The notes below the pieces were generated by a model. The model was not told where the DNA came from. It ran no database searches and was given only the letters and a program-made list of their open reading frames with translations. A stretch of 64,000 nucleotides of DNA from Rebecca billardiae RCC1528. Taxonomy: Eukaryota; Protista; Haptophyta. This document shows positions 759 through 9,217 of the stretch, piece after piece. The stretch covers positions 1,426,001-1,490,000 of the forward strand of contig OZ251226.1 in assembly GCA_965240325.2 (NCBI GenBank), written 5' to 3'. Position 1 is the first letter of the stretch, and every line of letters begins with the position of its first letter. A program made the position numbers and the translations under genes.

Positions 759-1008
759 GCGCGGATGCGCCGCCAACGACCAAAAGCCCGAAGCCCCGAG
801 AAAAGGGCGGGCCTGAGACGACGGTTTCAGGTTCGTCGAAAGGCCACGAACAGTGGCAGCGGCGTTTGGCGCGAGCGGTTGGAGTTGAGCTCCTCCATTT
901 CGCGGAATATTACCAGCATTTACCCGACCGAGGCTGTCCACCGGCCGCTGCGCAAAGATTCTTCCGCTGCGTGGTGGACGGCCGCGCGCATTCATCATCG
1001 CAACTGCG

Positions 1009-2990
1009 ATGAGACTCTTCCACGCCGCACGCTGGGCGCGACGTGCGGCGCTGGGCGCGGCCTGCGGCGCAAGCGCATCATTTGTGGCCTCTCGCGTCTC
1101 GTTGACCGAGGCCTCCGCGCCGTCGGCCGCTTCCGACCCGCTCTCGCCGCCGAGCGGCGCCCCGGCCGGCGGCCAGGCGCACGGCAAGGTGGTGGCATGT
1201 GGCTGGCCGACGTACACCAAGGCGCAGGTGGCGGAGCACGCGACGGCGGAGACGGGGATCTGGGTGACGTACAGGGACGGCGTGTACGACATCACCGACT
1301 TCGTTCAGGCGCACCCCGGGGGCAACCGTATCCTCCTCGCCGCGGGCAAGGCCATCGACGGATTTTGGAACCTGTACCAGCAGCACACCAACTCGCCCGC
1401 GCCCATGCAGATGCTGAAGGCGATGCAGATCGGTGCGTGCGCGCGGGCGGCAGGTGGCGTGGGGAGTGGAGGCGCGAGCGCCGCATGCCGCGCGCGCCGC
1501 GTGAGGCGGGGCGGGACACCACCACCGTGCATGCACTCGCGCGGAGGTGGATGCGCGCGCCGCATCAAACCGTCGGCGCGGCGCGGCGCTCGTGCGCGCA
1601 TGGCGCAGGCGTGCTCGACCCGTCGGAGGTGGAGCAGATAGACGAGGACGACCCGTACGCGCGTGACCCAAAGGTCCACCCCGCGCTGCACATGCACTCG
1701 GACAAGCCGCTCCAGGCCGAGACCCCCGCCGCGCTCCTCCTCGACAGCTGGGTGACGCCGAGCGACCTCTGGTTTGTGCGCGGCCACCACCCGGTGCCTG
1801 AGATTGACGAGAAGGAGTATCGGCTCACGGTGCGCGGGCGCGGGCTGGCGGAGCCGCGCGAGTTCAAGTTCACGCTCGAGGAGCTCAAGGCGAACTTCCC
1901 CAAGCACGAGGTCGTCGCCACGCTCCAGTGCGGCGGCAACGGCCGGCGGCTCTTCAACGACGTGAAGAAGACGATGGGCATCCCGTGGGGCGCCGGCGCC
2001 ATGTCCACGGCGCGCTGGGGCGGCGCACGCCTCAGCGACGTGCTGCGCTTCTGCGGGCTGCACGACACGGAGCGCGCGGGCGTGGAGCACGTGCAGTTCG
2101 AGGGCGCGGAGAGCCTCACCGCCTCCATCCCGGCCGACAAGGCCGTCAGCTCCACCGGCGACGTCCTGCTCGCCTATGAGATGAACGGAGAGGCGGTGCG
2201 CAGCCGCCCAACGACACGCGCGCGCGCGCGAGACCGCACGCCGCGGGCGGGGCGAGCGCGGCGGGCGGCGCCCTCTGCCGCTGCGGTCGTCGCTGGCGCG
2301 GCCGGCGGCTGCGCCCGCGCGCCTCTCACCCCGAGCCGTACCCGCGCATGCCTCCTCACGCGCGCCCCCACGCGCCCTCCCGCCGGCCTCTGTTCGCGCC
2401 AGGTCCCGCGCGCGCACGGCTACCCTGTGCGCGCGGTGGTGCCGGGGTACGTAGGCGTGCGGAATGTGAAGTGGCTGACGGCGGTGGTCACGTCGGACGA
2501 GGAGGCGAAGGGCCCGTGGCAGCGCGGCATCGCGTACAAGGGGTTCTCGCCCAACGTGGACTCCTTCGACCACGTCGACGTCGAGGCGGTGCCGAGCGTG
2601 CAGGAGCAGCCGGTGATGTCCGCCATCGTCCTGCCGCAGCCGGGGGAGACGGTGGAGGGTGACTCGGTCGAGGTGCGCGGCCTCGCGTGGAGCGGGGGCG
2701 GGCGCGGGATCGTGCGCGTCGACGTGTCCAACGACGACGGGCAGACGTGGACGACCGCGGAGCTCAAGGAGGGGAGCGAGCAGAAGCTCTCGCGCGCGTG
2801 GGCGTGGACGTTCTGGACGGCGACGCTCCCGGTGCCGCCGGGCGCCAAGCCAGGCGACAAGATGCGGCTGTGCGCCAAGGCGACTGACGCGTCGTACAAC
2901 ACGCAGCCCGAGAGATCTGACGCGATCTGGAACATCCGCGGCATCCTGTACAACGCGTGGTCGCGCGTCGAGGTGGAGCTCGATCCGTGA
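1009..2990 (+). CDS. SUOX: Sulfite oxidase (cytochrome b5 + Moco + dimerisation domains), probably mitochondrial; exons 1009-1432, 1609-2195, 2403-2990
   Basis: The b5 domain reads IWVTYRDGVYDITDFVQAHPGG. The Moco domain has WFVRGHHPVP, TLQCGGNGR (Cys ligand), VLLAYEMNGE and HGYPVRAVVPGYVGVRNVKWL. The dimerisation domain has GLAWSGGGRGIVRVDVS, WAWTFW, KATDASYNTQP and IWNIRG. The N-terminus is Arg/Ala-rich. GT-AG introns 1433-1608 and 2196-2402 restore the conserved junctions. Confidence 0.93.
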
Positions 2991-3745
2991 GGCGGAGTCG
3001 CGAGTATTGGCCTGAGTCTCCAGGCTACGTCGCGCTGGCGACACTGTGCCGCTACTCGCTAGCAGTAGCAGGCAGCAGTGCAGTGAGCACACCCGCCGCC
3101 GTAGCCTGCACACCGTCAGCCGATATGACTTACTGCTGTACGTATGAGAGTTCTGAGCAGGAAACGACTAGCTAGCAGCTGATGCGCGATCATGAGGCGG
3201 CTAGCTGGTGCGCCGCCGGGCTTATATTCAATGGTAGCTCAGGATTCTCAGGACCGTACGCGTGGTGGCTACGGAGTACGGTGTCCGCCGCCCTGCTCCG
3301 AGACAATCGGCCTGCTCATGACAGTGACACACGCGGGCTGGCTCCCACGCCCGCCCGCGCGCTGGCGCGCTCGGCGAGGCAACGCCTTGCAATGTTCCTG
3401 TATGCATCGTCATGCATGTAGTCTGTAGACGTAGTCCCTAGCGCCCTTGAGCGGGTCGTGGGCGTGTGGTGGCAGTGCGCGACGACCGCCGCCGAACTGC
3501 TCACAAGGCACGAGCCACGACGCGGCGACGACGACTGCGACGGCTAGCGCGCAGATGACATCACGTGCACGTTTCCGCCCGTACTGGTATCCACCGGCGG
3601 CGTAACGCGTGCGCAGCTCCCTCGGGCCTGCGCACCGCACGCACTCTCAGCGGCCGATGCGAGCGGTCCGCTGCGCACCGCACCCGCGCCGCGCCGACGG
3701 GTCACTGCCAACGACCGACAGCGGCCTCGCGCGCGTCGTCAACGC

Positions 3746-4457
3746 TCACTCCCGCACGACGAGGCTCTCGAGCAGCGTGCGCACGGGAGGAGCGATCGGC
3801 GTCGGTTTCCCGCCCTCGTCAACGTACACGTGGACGAACGTGCCCGCGGCCGCTGCCCGCTGCTCGGCCGCCGCCTTTTCAGCGACTCCGCCGTCAAAGA
3901 TGCCTATGGCGTACGCCACGCTGGACGAGCCCACGCGCTCGACGCGCAGGCCGATGTCGACGGGGTGCGGGTAGGTGAGCGGCTCGAAGTACCGGCACGA
4001 CGACTCGGCGACGAAGCGGGGCGCCTCCTTGCCGATGCCGTGCCGGATCAGGTGCTCGTTGACCGCATCGTCCATAAATGCGTAGTAGATCACCTGCGTC
4101 GTGTGGCGCGCGCGCGCGTGGGAGGGAGGCGGGTGAAGGGTGGACAGCCGCAGGCGCGCCGCTTGTCTCGCGCCAGTATGGTATCCGTGCGCCGCGGCGG
4201 CGACGCCCGTCGCGCGCGTCGCGCACGTTGTTGATGTGCCCAAAGCCTGAGGAGCAGGCGGGCGCAAGGGCGGGGACACGCGCGCGCGCGCATGCAAGGG
4301 GTCAGTGGAGCTGGCGTGGCAGAGGCACCGAGGTGATACGGAGTGTCGCACCGTCCGTGTCATTCCAGCGCGTCTGCCGGCGCTCAAAGAGCGCAAACGC
4401 GCTCCGTGCCGGCGGCGGCGCGCGTGTGGACAGCCGACGCACGTGCACGCCCGCCAT
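3746..4457 (-). CDS. Hotdog-fold acyl-CoA thioesterase (4HBT/YbgC-like); exons 4457-4352, 4246-4227, 4093-3746
   Basis: The spliced product reads [27 protein letters not shown]...FVAESSCRYFEPLTYP...GLRVERVGSSSVAYAIGIF...GTFVHVYVD. This has the RW-D-D-x-GH-NN signature of the family. Confidence 0.88.
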
Positions 4458-4989
4458 CGTGCGTGGTTGTGGCCGGCCGGCCGGCGTTTGTCAAGGTGGG
4501 GGATTATTATATCATTTGAGCTGAAAACGCCTGCTGCGACCGCCTATTCGTCAAGCAAGTTCGTCGTGCCCGAGTGAGATTCTCTCGAACCGGCCGCAGA
4601 CCGGCCATCTCCGGATGCCCAGATGCACGTCTCGGCGCAACGACTGGGCATCACGGCCGTGTGGCGCGCACCGAAAGCTCGGGCAACACGCCGAACTATC
4701 AAATAGTTTCGTCGCGAAGGTCGTGAGGCGCGCTCCCGACCACTCGTCTGTCGGCACCCAAGTTTCACTCAAGCCCATTGGTGCGCTCTAATTAATCCTC
4801 GCCTAGCAACAACATTCTCGCCGTCCGTGCCAAGGTTCGAGCACCTTCATCAGGCCGGCCCTTTGGTCTGGGGCGACCCTGTAAGATTCCTGCCGCATCT
4901 TGACGGGCATCTCCGCGCTTCTCGCGGCGGCTGTCCAGAGAGCTCCGACACCGCACCGCCGGCGCACGCGCAAGCCGATACCCCAAGCT

Positions 4990-6010
4990 ATGACCGACGT
5001 CGCGACGGCCGCCGCTTCCCCGGCGCTCGACGCGCTGCCCAAGGCGTCACCCTCCTCGGTGAAGGGCCTGTGGACGATGGCCAAGCTCCTCTCTGCCTAC
5101 CTCGTCGGCTTCGCGCTCATCCGCGCCTCGGCGGTGTCGCTTCCCCTCGGCGTCGGCATCTCCGCGATGGCGCTGTCTGGGGTGCGCGGCGGCGACGCGC
5201 GTACACGGCCTCGCGTGGCAATGCACGACCCAACGCGCACTCCAAACCGCCTGCGGCGCCAGCCGCACCGCCAGTGCACTCACCCGAGCCGCCGCGCGCC
5301 CTGCGACCCGCGACCGTGCGCGCGCAGTTTTTCGTTGTTGGTGTGGACTGCAGCCGCCGCACCTTCTTCGCAGGCAAGGCTCTCAACGACTTTGTGGGCG
5401 CACTCGTGCTCCTGCCCCTCCTTCGCTCGCTCGACTCCGTGCGCCAGTCGCCCAAGGTGCGCCGCGCGGCAGTGCGGTCGCGGCTCGACCGCGCGGCGCC
5501 ATGCGTCACGGCGGGCGTGCGGCGCGAGCATCGGCGGTGTGCGTGCGGCGCGCGCAGCCCGTTGCTCACTCGCGTTCGCGTCTCGCGCCGCCGCCACCGC
5601 CGCCGCCGCCCCGTCGCGCCGCGCAGGGTGGCCACGGCCTCGTGACGCGCCTGCTCAGCGCGGCGCAGCGCTCGGGCCTCGTGCTCGCGATCGTTGCGGC
5701 CGCCGTCGGCGCCGCGATCTACTTCGGCCGCGTCGTCGACCTGCTCAAGTACTGGGTGGTTCCGCTGCTGTGCATGCACCTGCAGCTCGGCACCTTCACT
5801 TCGTCGACGAGCCGCGGCTCGTGGCCGTCGTACATGCTGCTCCACCCGGCGATGCAGGAGGCGGAGCACTCCGGCCTCGCGGAGGCGGCGCGCGAGACGC
5901 CCGCGTACGCGGTCAAGCAGCTGCACCTCGCGGCGGAGCGCGCGATGCCGTCGGGCGCGTCGTTCTCCGGCCTCGGCGCCTCGCTCATGCGCTTCGTCAT
6001 CGTCAGCGGC
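4990..6010 (+). other. Module 1 of fusion: degenerate plastid omega-6 (FAD6/DesA)-like desaturase domain lacking His boxes
   Basis: SGFFVVGVDCSRRTFFAGKALNDFVGALVLLPL parallels the FAD6 consensus TGFFVIGHDCAHKSF...VEDIVG.LAFLPL. LLKYWVVPLLCMHLQLGTFT parallels VKFWLMPWLGYHFWMSTFT. The His residues of box 1 are replaced by V and R, and the box 2 and box 3 regions are deleted or eroded. Confidence 0.65.
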
Positions 6011-9000
6011 AAGCGCGAGTTCGTCCTCTGGCCCCTCGGCGCGGCGCTCGTCGCGCTCAGCTCGCCGTCCGGCCGCGCGGCGCTCGCCATCGACTCGATG
6101 CCGTGGCAGCTCACGATGAAGGAGACGACGGAGTGGATGGCGCGGCACTACGAGATCCCCTTCATCCTCGTCGCCACCTACCTCACCGGCATCTACGTCG
6201 GCACCAAGCTGATGGCCTCGCGCCAGCCGTTCGACCTGAAGGGCGCGCTCGCCGCGTGGAACTTCCTGCTGAGCGCCGGCTCGATCACCGGCTTCGTGAT
6301 GGCGTCGCACCTCGCGATCAACGCGGTGCGCCACAAGGGCGTGCACGCGCTCGCGTGCGACAACACCGTGTGGTGGGGCAACCCCGCCGTCATGCTCTTC
6401 TGCCTCTCCAAGGTGCCCGAGCTCGTCGACACGGCGTTCATCGTGCTGCGCAAGAAGCCGCTCCACTTCCTGCACTACTACCACCACGCGACGGTGCTGC
6501 TCTTCTGCTGGGACGCGTGGGTGGTGAACAACGCGGTCGGCGGCATGTTCGCCATCATGAACCTCCTCGTGCACTCGATCATGTACGCGTACTACTGCGC
6601 GGCCGCGATCGGCGTGCGCTTCCCGCAGATCCTGCGCAAGAACATCACCAACCTGCAGCTCACGCAGATGGTGCTCGGCTGCAGCCTGTGCGTGTACAAC
6701 ATGTGCAACTGCAACCGCACGCCGTCGAACAACATGTACGGCCTCGCCATGTACGCCTCGTACTTCGCGCTCTTCCTCAACTTCTGGGTGCAGCAGTACG
6801 TGATCATGCCGCGCAAGAAGAAGGCGGCGGCGGCGGCGGCCAAGAAGGAGGAGGCGGCGGCCGCGGCGGCGGCGGCGGCGCCCAAGGGCGCCAAGCCGGC
6901 GGCGGCGGAGGAGAAGCTGCACTGGGGCTACTTCCTCTCGCCGATCAACTGGCCGATGGGCTCGTACATCGCTCTCGTCCACGCGCTCGGCATCTGGGGC
7001 CTGATGCGCGCGCCGTACGCCGCGCCGCAGACGTGGCTCTGGTCGTTCATCCTCTGGCCCATCTCGGGCTTCGGCATCACCGGCGGCGTGCACCGGCTGT
7101 GGTCGCACCGCTCGTACAAGGCGAAGGCGCCGTTCCGCTTCCTCACGATGGTCGCCAACTCGATCGCCAACCAGGGCACCATCCACCACTGGGCGCGCGA
7201 CCACCGCGTGCACCACCTCCACTCTGAGACGGACTCGGACCCGCACAACGCGCTCCGCGGCTTCTTCTTCGCGCACGTCGGCTGGCTGCTGCTCAAGAAG
7301 CGCCCCGCGGTGATCGAGGCGGGCAAGAAGGTGGACATGAGCGACATCGACGCCGACTGGGTCTGCGAGGTGCAGCGCAAGCTCGACCCCTTCTGGAACA
7401 TGTTCTGGTGCTTCGTCTTCCCCGCGCTCGTCGCGCAGCACGGCTGGGGCGAGAGCTTTGGCACGGGCGTGCTCGTCGCGGGCTTCATGCGCTACGTGTA
7501 CGTGCTGCACTGCACGTGGCTGGTGAACTCGGCGGCGCACCTGCACGGCGACCGGCCGTACGAGCCGCGCACCAACCCGTCCGAGAACTTCACCGTCGCC
7601 GTCGCCTCGCTCGGCGAGGGCTGGCACGACTGGCACCACAAGTTCGCGTTTGACTACGCGGCCTCGGAGTACGGCATCGCCTTCCAGTTCAACCCGACGA
7701 AGCTGATCATCGACATGGGCGCGTGGGTCGGGCAGGTGTACGAGCGGCGCCGCGCGACGGACATCTGGCAGCGCGAGGTGGCGCGGCGCGACGCGAAGGA
7801 GGCGGAGCTCGCCAAGCTCACGCTGCCGAAGGACTCGACCGAGCTGAGCAAGGCGTCGGTGCGCGGCGCGATCCCGGAGCACTGCTTCAAGCACTCGTAC
7901 GCCAAGTCCTTCTACCACCTCGCCGAGGACCTGGCGATCATCGGCGCGCTGGTGGGCGCGGTGCTGTACGCGCAGCAGGCGCTGCCGTCGTGGGCGATGG
8001 CGCTCGCGTGGCCCGTCTACTGGTTCTACGCCGGGCTCGTCGGCACGGGCCTGTGGGTGCTCGCGCACGAGTGCGGCCACGGAGGCTTCACCGCTAGCCA
8101 GGTGCGGCGCCGCGCGGCGCCGCGCGGCGCGCGCGCGAACCGAGCAAGCGGGCTGGCGAGCGGTGCGCGGCGGGATGCCGCGGCGTCGGGTGCCTGACCG
8201 CTCGCCCTGCCCGCGCCCCCCATCGCCCTGCCCGCGCCCGCAGACCGTGAACGACATCGTCGGCTTCACCCTGCACTCGGCGCTGCTGACGCCCTACTTC
8301 TCGTGGCAGATCACGCACGCGAAGCACCACCGCCGCACCAACCACCTCACCGATGGCGAGAGCTGGGTGCCGTCGGCGGGCAACCCGAACGGCAAGCGCG
8401 CGCAGTGGTACAAGACGCACGCCGGCACCATCTTCCGCATCGCGCTCGTCTGGACGATCGGCTGGTGGGTGTACCTCATCAACAACGACACCGGTGCGCG
8501 GCGCGTGCCGAGCGCGCGCGCGCGCGCGCGCGCGCGCGGCCAGCCAGCCTCTCGCGCCGCGCCGCCCCGCCCCGCGCGCGCGCCGTCGCGGCCACGTGCC
8601 GTCCCGACCTCTGACGCTCTCCGCCCCCGCCCCGCCGCCCTCTGCGCACAGGCGCGCGCAAGAACAAGGGCCAGTCCCACTTCGACCCGAACGCGCGCGG
8701 CCTCTTCTCCGCCAAGGAGGCGTGGAAGGTGCGGGCGTCGAACGCGGGCATGGTGGCGATGCTCGGCGTGCTCGGGTATGCGTGCCAGGTGTTCGGCGTG
8801 CGCCAGGTCGTGGCGCTCTACTTTGTGCCGCAGATGATTGTGAACATCTACCTCACGTGCATCACCTTCATGCAGCACACGCACGAGGCCGTGCCGCACT
8901 ACGACGAGAAGGAGTGGACGTGGCTGCGCGGCGGCCTCGCGACCGTCGACCGCTCGATGGGCGTCTGGTTTGACCGCCGGCTGCACCACATCACCGACTC

Positions 9001-9217
9001 GCACGTGTGCCACCACCTCTTCTCGGACATGCCCTTCTACGGCGCGAAGGAGGCGACGCCGTACATCGCGGAGCACTGCGGCAAGTACTACCGCTCGCAC
9101 GTCTCCACCTACGCCGGCTCGGTGTACCTCGGCTTTTGGCACGACTTTTACACGACCATGAAGGCGTGCCTGGTCGTGCAGCAGGACGGCGTCGACCACT
9201 TCTGGTACTTCAAGTGA
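4990..9217 (+). CDS. Four-module fatty-acid modification fusion (~1203 aa): degenerate FAD6-like desaturase + ELO elongase + delta-9 desaturase + FAD2-type desaturase; exons 4990-5181, 5328-5456, 5627-8101, 8244-8493, 8652-9217
   Basis: Four GT-AG introns give a continuous 3612-nt frame. ELO motifs: SKVPELVDTAFIVLRKK, FLHYYHH, MNLLVHSIMYAYY, ITNLQLTQM. Delta-9 His boxes: HRLWSH, HRVHH, HDWHH, plus WLVNSAAH. FAD2-type His boxes: HECGH, HAKHH, HVCHH, plus TFMQHT and EWTWLRGGLATVDR. Confidence 0.92.
6110..6810 (+). other. Module 2 of fusion: GNS1/SUR4 (ELO) condensing enzyme, ELOVL6/saturated-acyl-like
   Basis: HYYHH at about 6473-6487, plus the KxxExxDT, NxxxHxxMYxYY and TxxQxxQ motifs, and a GLAMYASYFALF C-terminal helix. 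Confidence 0.92.
6917..7775 (+). other. Module 3 of fusion: SCD/OLE1-type delta-9 desaturase with no fused cytochrome b5
   Basis: GITGGVHRLWSHRSYKA (HRLWSH at 7091-7108), WARDHRVHH (HRVHH at 7202-7216), DPHNALRGFFFAHVGWLL, and GEGWHDWHHKFAFDY (HDWHH at 7625-7639). Confidence 0.93.
7825..9217 (+). other. Module 4 of fusion: FAD2/FAD3-family (delta-12 or omega-3) desaturase
   Basis: VRGAIPEHCFKHS, GLWVLAHECGHGGF (HECGH at 8066-8080), LHSALLTPYFSWQITHAKHH (HAKHH at 8316-8330), SHFDP, and LHHITDSHVCHHLFSDMPFY (HVCHH at 9002-9016). Confidence 0.92.

Follow-up and report, generated by a model that had tools for sequence, protein, structure and literature searches.

The stretch of DNA analysed here, hereafter the window, comprises 64,000 nucleotides (nt) of the haptophyte Rebecca billardiae RCC1528 (contig OZ251226.1, positions 1,426,001 to 1,490,000), and its forward strand carries a gene in which four lipid-enzyme modules are fused in one reading frame. 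From the N- to the C-terminus these are a pseudo-desaturase that resembles FAD6/DesA and has lost its histidine (His) boxes, an ELOVL6-like ELO elongase, an SCD-type acyl-coenzyme A (acyl-CoA) delta-9 desaturase, and a FAD2-type delta-12 desaturase. Our results indicate that the product is probably a single polytopic membrane protein of the endoplasmic reticulum (ER) with about 20 transmembrane helices, which combines a dead desaturase fold with an ELOVL6-like 3-ketoacyl-CoA synthase, an SCD-type delta-9 desaturase and a FAD2-type delta-12 (omega-6) desaturase. The gene encodes 1203 codons followed by TGA (9215-9217), which is its only stop, and the predicted mass of the product is 133.8 kDa. 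The features of the gene, in positions of the window and with amino acid (aa) numbers of the product, are as follows.

4990..9217, + strand: whole coding region of the fusion gene, five exons, colinear with the orthologues P0002, P0003, P0005 and P0006 over all four junctions
4990..5181, + strand: exon 1, aa 1-64, N-terminus and transmembrane helices 1-2 of the pseudo-desaturase (orthologue alignment)
5182..5327, + strand: intron 1, 146 nt, GTGCGCGG...GCGCGCAG (gap-free reproduction of the orthologue sequence)
5328..5456, + strand: exon 2, aa 65-107, degenerate His box 1 VDCSR (5343-5357), NDFVG motif and degenerate box 2 region (alignment to active HDCGH/HDCAH desaturases)
5457..5626, + strand: intron 2, 170 nt (gene model and orthologue alignment)
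5627..8101, + strand: exon 3, aa 108-932, remainder of the pseudo-desaturase, ELO, linker 1, delta-9, linker 2 and start of the FAD2-type module through HECGHGGFTASQ (one open frame)
5627..6100, + strand: part of the pseudo-desaturase within exon 3, aa 108-265, with transmembrane helices 3-4, a KYWVVPLL..MH motif and a single hydrophobic tail helix at about aa 238-253 (AlphaFold2, Foldseek and helix count)
6101..6820, + strand: ELO (GNS1/SUR4) condensing-enzyme module, aa 266-505 (Pfam, ELOVL7 match, motifs)
6821..6928, + strand: linker 1, aa 506-541, Lys/Ala-rich and of low complexity (AlphaFold2 confidence, pLDDT, below 50 at P0002 residues 518-537)
6929..7795, + strand: SCD-type acyl-CoA delta-9 desaturase module, aa 542-830 (PDB-profile matches, motifs)
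7796..7855, + strand: linker 2, aa 831-850, charged (sequence composition and substitution rates)
7856..8101, + strand: first part of the FAD2-type delta-12 module, aa 851-932, with HECGH at 8066-8080 (Pfam, motifs)
8102..8243, + strand: intron 3, 142 nt (missing from orthologous transcripts)
8244..8493, + strand: exon 4, middle part of the FAD2-type module with HAKHH at 8316-8330 (Pfam, orthologue alignment)
8494..8651, + strand: intron 4, 158 nt (missing from orthologous transcripts)
8652..9217, + strand: exon 5, C-terminal part of the FAD2-type module with HVCHH at 9002-9016 and the stop at 9215-9217 (Pfam, orthologue alignment)

Exon 3 alone provides 825 codons without interruption, inside a plus-strand open reading frame (ORF) at 5501-8197, and the ELO module, the delta-9 module, both linkers and the start of the FAD2-type module thus need no exon joining, which bears out the view of an earlier note on this DNA that the fusion is no artefact of gene-model merging. 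That note had also assigned the modules to the ELO, delta-9 and FAD2-type families, described the His boxes of the three catalytic modules as intact and reported the absence of an HPGG cytochrome b5 domain. Its assignments agree with the Pfam, PDB-profile and relative-based evidence given below, and all seven boxes were located by motif; no Cyt-b5 domain or HPGG motif was found in the fusion protein by Pfam and motif scanning, and the Pfam scan of P0002 gave the same result. On the plus strand, Pfam recovered a full ELO domain and then an FA_desaturase domain in the ORF at 5501-8197, and the middle and the end of a second FA_desaturase domain in two downstream ORF pieces. All four introns are of the form GTGCG...CAG and 142-170 nt long, and none has a length that is a multiple of three. 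Several in-frame donor/acceptor pairs are possible for intron 1, and 5181/5328 was chosen as the sole pair that matches the orthologues without a gap.

The window has a GC content of about 70%, near the 73% reported for Diacronema lutheri, and long ORFs on both strands. As such a composition yields long spurious ORFs, the length of an ORF alone is no proof of a gene, and the case for the fusion gene rests on domain E-values and on orthologues. Two spurious ORFs lie over the gene itself, one at 5117-8269 on the minus strand (1050 aa) and one at 4900-7227 in another frame of the plus strand (775 aa), and frames of this kind are a trap for ORF-based gene callers.

Support for the continuity of the gene came from a separate assembly and from related species. 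The separate Logan assembly of run ERR14847148 has a contig (L004) that shares 100% identity with positions 925-8536 of the window, about 7.6 kb. A protein search restricted to long candidates retrieved full-length orthologues of 1186-1226 aa with 69-76% identity (76% for the best public one), which align end to end with the gene model and show no gap at any of the four predicted junctions. The orthologue P0002 is one uninterrupted ORF on three transcript contigs of 3.86-3.88 kb from three samples; since introns 3 and 4 of the window are missing there, these contigs represent spliced mRNAs. Single ORFs on transcript contigs of 4.0-4.6 kb also encode P0003, P0005 and P0006, and the cluster of P0006 unites MMETSP transcripts labelled 'type:complete' with fragments from Pavlovales sp. 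CCMP2436. Because single ORFs lie on intron-free transcript contigs, the fusion is one mRNA and one ORF in Pavlovales relatives, in at least four other transcriptome samples. The NCBI annotation of CCMP2436 splits the orthologue into an 'ELO family' protein of 196 aa and a 'fatty acid desaturase, partial' of 222 aa (P0028 and P0029; KAJ1633766.1 and KAJ1633768.1), and the MMETSP transcripts of the same cluster hold one ORF of 1226 aa. As public annotations split or truncate the fusion gene in this way, the desaturase and elongase inventories of Pavlovales algae have been miscounted.

The ELO module matches the Pfam family PF01151 over profile positions 1-241 of 242 (E 2.8e-61; 207.6 bits against a cut-off of 27) and the ELOVL7 structure 6y7f with an E-value of 4e-19. 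Its motifs KVPELVDT, HYYHH (6473-6487), MYAYY and QLTQM align to those of ELOVL7. The nearest named relatives, 38-44% identical, are called 'ELOVL6' by automatic annotation, and in a tree of uncharacterised sequences the fused Pavlovales copies form a clade of their own among such ELOVL6-named relatives. The delta-9 module matches human SCD1 (4zyo, E 4.5e-82) and mouse SCD1 (4ymk, E 6.3e-80), and its boxes HRLWSH (7091-7108), HRVHH (7202-7216) and HDWHH (7625-7639), together with the NSAAH motif, place all metal-ligand positions in alignment with the two structures; the module is accordingly predicted to be an acyl-CoA enzyme of the SCD type. The FAD2-type module spans aa 851-1203, of which 82 residues lie in exon 3, and its boxes HECGH, HAKHH and HVCHH are all present. 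FA_desaturase matches cover the exon pieces, and the corresponding match in P0002 reaches 118 bits. Its nearest stand-alone relatives are haptophyte proteins of about 385 aa with 50-57% identity, the named ones being omega-6/delta-12 desaturases by automatic naming, and identity to plant and oomycete FAD2 is about 40%. In a FAD2 tree that holds neither an omega-3 outgroup nor a characterised enzyme, the fused Pavlovales copies form one clade inside a group supported at 100/100, which also contains the fused euglenid copies and stand-alone haptophyte-type genes and lies apart from other FAD2s.

The first 265 residues form the pseudo-desaturase, which has VDCSR in place of box 1 and has lost boxes 2 and 3; the latter two are absent in all Pavlovales, euglenid and Rhizarian copies examined. 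An AlphaFold2 (AF2) model of the module was obtained with pLDDT 82 and a predicted template modelling score (pTM) of 0.75, and the two helices encoded by exon 1 were placed at residues 22-45 and 50-72 (P0002 numbering). Foldseek returned Synechocystis DesA and chloroplast FAD6 as top matches (P20388, P46312 and others; probability 1.0, TM-scores 0.52-0.56), and a profile of the module retrieved active desaturases with HDCGH/HDCAH and HNxHH/HDRHH boxes. Core residues of the desaturase fold (C, G, W and P) are retained. Since all His-box ligands are lost, the N-terminal module is predicted to be a pseudoenzyme that would be unable to bind a di-iron centre in the usual way. A recent internal duplication of the FAD2-type module was considered as its source and rejected, for hhalign gave only a weak match of 46 columns around box 1 (probability 56%), and both profile and fold point to relatives of FAD6/DesA.

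The ratio of nonsynonymous to synonymous substitutions (dN/dS) was estimated by region from five Pavlovales coding sequences, in which a strong bias at third codon positions towards GC compresses dS, so that only relative values are meaningful: 0.21-0.50 for the N-terminal module, 0.14-0.32 for ELO, 0.27-0.66 for delta-9, 0.16-0.34 for the FAD2-type module and about 0.5-3 for the linkers. All four modules, the dead one included, are thus under purifying selection and the linkers are near-neutral; the orthologue alignment likewise shows linker lengths that differ freely among species. The earlier note had listed a dead desaturase, and a His-less desaturase (VDCSR) does stand in frame there; it is, however, no decaying remnant but a conserved module, which is found well beyond this lineage.

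A role for this module is suggested by membrane topology. The ELO fold, as seen in the ELOVL7 structure, has its N-terminus in the lumen and its C-terminus in the cytosol, and SCD-type and FAD-type desaturases, as seen in the SCD1 structure, have both termini in the cytosol. A four-helix desaturase fold directly before ELO therefore needs one extra helix, because the ELO N-terminus is lumenal and desaturases end in the cytosol. Beyond the conserved R-D/E motif at the end of the module, the tail holds one hydrophobic helix in all five Pavlovales proteins, in which ELO follows, and two hydrophobic helices in seven of the eight proteins in which a desaturase comes next. The number of tail helices, as modelled, thus matches what the topology argument requires and fits a role as topology adaptor. 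In the full-length AF2 model of P0002 (pLDDT 84.7, pTM 0.50, linker 1 disordered), the four modules have 5, 7, 4 and 4 long hydrophobic helices, respectively. All ELO/delta-9 fusions seen, those of Pavlovales and of Rhizaria and two direct ELO-delta-9 fusions, have ELO ahead of delta-9. The proposal of the earlier note that domain order mirrors pathway order holds in so far as the order matches the route from 16:0 to 18:2, but membrane topology, given the lumenal N-terminus of ELO, can account for the arrangement as well as pathway order does.

Multiple fusions of the same families appear in other protists. The euglenid fusions of Eutreptiella (P0011) and Euglena longa (P0335) consist of the N-terminal module, delta-9 and the FAD2-type module, and the Rhizarian fusions of Chlorarachnion (P0012), Mataza (P0035) and others consist of ELO, the N-terminal module and delta-9. 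In Paramoeba atlantica, an N-terminally incomplete protein of 1498 aa (P0331) joins ELO, the His-less module and two cytochrome-b5 front-end desaturases, and looks like an elongase with two front-end steps of a polyunsaturated fatty acid (PUFA) pathway in one predicted chain. It contains HPGG twice and the boxes HDASH, HIIGHH and QIEHH followed by HEAVH, HNEHH and QIEHH, and it lies with P0334 and P0333 on an ENA contig of 41 kb. Amoebozoan delta-9/b5 proteins match the dead module more weakly than the euglenid and Rhizarian copies do. Among them, the 'delta 9 fatty acid desaturase' of Dictyostelium discoideum (XP_636528.1; P0338; 701 aa) shows an N-like region, delta-9 and a C-terminal b5 domain; its N-terminal region of about 300 aa has no His boxes and matches the His-less module weakly (profile E 2e-4), so that this model organism may carry the same pseudo-desaturase. 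In the Amoebozoan Stenamoeba (P0174), box 1 (HDCGH) is still present together with a box-2-like HHTVHH.

Because its ELO is of another type on a very distant branch, the Rhizarian ELO/delta-9 fusion is independent, and a fusion of ELO with delta-9 thus arose more than once, which argues that coupling the two steps has a functional benefit. With regard to the FAD2-type module, the tree is compatible with a single ancestral fusion of the N-terminal module, delta-9 and FAD2 in euglenids and Pavlovales, followed by insertion of ELO, as well as with two fusions that arose independently. The deep nodes of the delta-9 tree are unresolved. A common origin of all fusions was considered and is not upheld. 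The pairing of Pavlovales with a giant-virus ELO-delta-9 sequence is weak in the delta-9 tree (82/45) and unmatched in the ELO tree, so that neither a transfer nor a donor is claimed.

Several further sequences were noted alongside these fusions. A direct ELO-delta-9 fusion of 564 aa (P0010) lies at L009:5211-6905 on a Logan contig of DRR337542, with its ELO 45% and its delta-9 60% identical to the modules of the window; it is 1.4 kb from a major capsid protein gene of nucleocytoplasmic large DNA viruses (NCLDV), on a contig that also holds thioredoxin and histone genes, and to judge by this context a giant virus appears to encode an elongase-desaturase fusion. A scan of IMG/VR for viral ELO-delta-9 fusions gave only stand-alone delta-9 genes and one odd ORF of 2968 aa. 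The latter (L010:3-8909, on the 103-kb contig UViG_3300043395_004365 with 58% GC) has a delta-9 domain at 55% identity, with a frame open for 2968 codons upstream through repeats, and may be a real giant fusion or a mere high-GC open frame. Tandem pairs of delta-9 domains were seen in Amorphochlora amoebiformis (P0009, 566 aa) and Darwinula stevensoni (P0018, 546 aa).

Based on homology, we propose that the three live modules of the Rebecca protein would catalyse the initial committed steps of the aerobic PUFA route in the ER, from 16:0 to 18:0, to 18:1(9) and to 18:2(9,12), steps which open the ER route to eicosapentaenoic and docosahexaenoic acids in such algae (PMC11943726, PMC4377986). KCR, HCD, ECR, cytochrome b5 and its reductase would act in trans, and probably also an acyl-CoA:lysolipid acyltransferase. 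The fusion would guarantee a 1:1:1 stoichiometry and co-localisation of the three activities, and a closed substrate tunnel is not implied. The dead module with its single tail helix would serve as membrane scaffold or topology adaptor, in which five helices put the N-terminus of ELO in the lumen and orient all later modules correctly, with their active sites on the cytosolic side, in the 5+7+4+4 arrangement.

Certain points weigh against this proposal. Transcript support comes from relatives and not from RNA or protein of this genome: searches of a small RNA run and of three other runs (5-7% of sampled words each) gave only matches of 20-250 nt from other high-GC organisms, and the RNA run gave none. 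With a pTM of 0.50 for the whole chain, the inter-domain arrangement is not given by the AF2 model, and the helices were counted by hydropathy and structure prediction rather than with a dedicated topology method. Homology and automatic annotations are the basis for chain length and regiospecificity, and activity is predicted for every member. In addition, the product of the ELO module needs three further enzymes before it can serve as substrate for delta-9, and the 'line' would be interrupted by an acyl transfer between delta-9 and the FAD2-type module, because the described substrate is phospholipid-bound 18:1 for FAD2-type enzymes and acyl-CoA for enzymes of the ADS/SCD type (PMC4377986).

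Four alternative explanations were weighed against a co-localised set of enzymes on a dead scaffold. One of them, which we regard as unlikely, is a true metabolon, whose modules pass the acyl chain directly, with 16:0-CoA entering and 18:2 leaving and no mixing with bulk pools; this would require an acyl-CoA-dependent FAD2-type module or a dead fold that works as an acyl- or lipid-binding relay. The retention of the fusion across Pavlovales, the independent recurrence of the ELO/delta-9 fusion, the C, G, W and P core that the dead module keeps without His ligands under purifying selection, and the position of the Paramoeba dead module between ELO and two b5-front-end desaturases are in its favour, whereas KCR, HCD and ECR are needed after ELO and none is in the polypeptide, relatives of FAD2 are described as acting on acyl-lipids (PMC4377986), the linkers evolve almost neutrally and are disordered, and the interface between domains cannot be assessed from the AF2 model at its pTM. 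The reading of the earlier note as an 'assembly line' is plausible but supported in part only, channelling stands as an inference, and direct channelling is doubtful because KCR, HCD and ECR lie outside the chain and the carriers of the FAD2-type and SCD-type substrates differ. We also consider, with little confidence, a wider hypothesis, in which the His-less FAD6/DesA-like fold would be an ancient non-catalytic module (scaffold, topology adaptor or acyl relay) at the base of natural 'multizymes' in protists of at least four supergroups, and possibly in giant viruses; the Pavlovales protein would then be the fullest case known, a single-chain metabolon of about 20 helices taking 16:0-CoA to 18:2 with real hand-over, which implies an acyl-CoA-dependent FAD2-type step.

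The modules could also carry out different chemistry, with a product other than linoleate. SCD-type enzymes vary in their preference for 16:0 or 18:0, as is generally known, and delta-9 might chiefly convert 16:0 into 16:1n-7, for ELO to extend to 18:1n-7; alternatively, the C-terminal module might be an omega-3 or a bifunctional delta-12/15 desaturase, or one module might be regulatory. We judge this improbable, given that ELO groups with ELOVL6-named elongases of saturated and monounsaturated chains and not with PUFA elongases, and that the named members of the clade of the C-terminal module are delta-12/omega-6 enzymes, even though specificity was deduced from relatives 38-57% identical and mostly named automatically, and diatom FAD2 takes several chain lengths (PMC4377986).

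A polyprotein that yields several products, by cleavage at the low-complexity linkers or from internal starts, so that separate ELO, delta-9 and delta-12 enzymes result and the fusion serves co-expression only, seems quite improbable. Each Pavlovales transcript contig that was retrieved carries the full-length transcript with a single ORF, no protease module and no known cleavage motif was seen in the fusion protein, the freely varying length of the linkers is unexpected for a processing site, and a tail-helix count that tracks the next domain makes sense only for insertion into the membrane in one piece. The single-chain product is nevertheless a prediction at the protein level, the linkers are Lys/Ala-rich, near-neutral and predicted to be disordered, and a cluster of Lys residues after ELO is like the C-terminal di-lysine signal for ER retrieval that stand-alone ELOs carry. 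Finally, the wrong joining of separate neighbouring genes, by assembly or gene model, is close to refuted: none of this organism's reads stand behind the join and long spurious ORFs are common in such high-GC DNA, but ELO, delta-9 and both junctions lie within one exon, the separately assembled Logan contig is identical over 7.6 kb, and orthologues from four to five other samples show the same colinear architecture on spliced transcripts.

Membrane-bound elongases and desaturases are regarded as individual ER enzymes, and lipid biochemistry has long asked, with no settled answer, whether they assemble into physical metabolons. A conserved single chain with an elongase and two sequential desaturases makes this question testable, as a test case for an assembly line. 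The co-localised fusion is also a ready-made part for PUFA engineering in yeast or oilseeds, where yield is limited by imbalance and by shuttling between acyl-CoA and phosphatidylcholine pools. Similarly, the presence of the dead module across euglenids, Rhizaria and Amoebozoa, and weakly in Dictyostelium, points to an unrecognised pseudoenzyme role in the desaturase superfamily. A full-text literature search turned up no description of natural fusions between elongases and desaturases or among several desaturases, its scope leaving out most subscription journals and patents so that absence is no proof, and the genome paper on Diacronema lutheri counts desaturases and elongases and mentions no such fusion. 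The earlier note knew of no characterised protein with this architecture, and no paper describing one was found, but orthologues are already public, unannotated or mis-split, and related fusions occur in several protist groups. The component families are all well known, and the fusion sequences had been deposited without a functional reading; new here are the purifying selection on the dead module, its recurrence in euglenids, Rhizaria and Amoebozoa, where it is joined to desaturases of the delta-9 or front-end type, the tail-helix rule, and the repeated fusion of ELO with delta-9.

In the neighbourhood, a gene for a 4HBT-type acyl-CoA thioesterase-like protein (3749-4396, minus strand; Pfam 4HBT E 7e-9) is found in divergent orientation about 600 bp upstream of the fusion gene, and may be a lipid-metabolism neighbour with a shared promoter region. 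A gene for a sulfite-oxidase-like molybdopterin oxidoreductase with Oxidored_molyb and Mo-co_dimer domains lies at 1485-2990 on the plus strand. A megablast search of the window against a plasmid collection gave, as was to be expected, no match.

Comparison with known systems reveals both conserved and distinct features in each module. Like ELOVL6 and other 'delta-0' palmitate elongases, the ELO module is full-length, is predicted to have seven helices and carries the motifs KxxExxDT, HxxHH, MYxYY and TxxQxxQ; it differs in its position inside a chain of 1203 aa, with a five-helix module before it and a desaturase after it, and in lacking the free C-terminus with ER-retrieval signal of stand-alone ELOs. 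The delta-9 module matches SCD1 over the whole catalytic domain, where all His boxes align and so do the Asn and His of the di-iron site; yeast OLE1 has a fused cytochrome b5, which the fusion delta-9 lacks, and unlike both SCD1 and OLE1 it is flanked on both sides by other fused lipid enzymes. The FAD2-type module shares three His boxes with ER FAD2-type and stand-alone haptophyte delta-12 desaturases and falls into one well-supported clade with the haptophyte proteins, but stands at the C-terminal end of a fusion.

The pseudo-desaturase has the same fold as plastid FAD6 and cyanobacterial DesA, and its profile matches are among their His-box-bearing relatives, whereas it is without His-box ligands, without a plastid presequence, and shortened by a deletion of about 70 residues between box 2 and the third transmembrane helix. 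The only solved structure that matches both its profile (E 2.9e-32) and its fold is FADL (8xks chain K) of the Chlamydomonas Orf2971/Ycf2-FtsHi import motor, which is likewise a desaturase-fold protein within a larger membrane complex; it belongs to another compartment and another complex and is a structural precedent only.

Among the related fusions, those of euglenids share three of the four Pavlovales modules in the same order, and euglenid, Rhizarian, Amoebozoan and Paramoeba proteins all link the His-less module to desaturases. The ELO of the Rhizarian fusion is of another type and sits on a very long, separate branch, and only in Pavlovales are all four modules united, with ELO placed between the dead module and delta-9.

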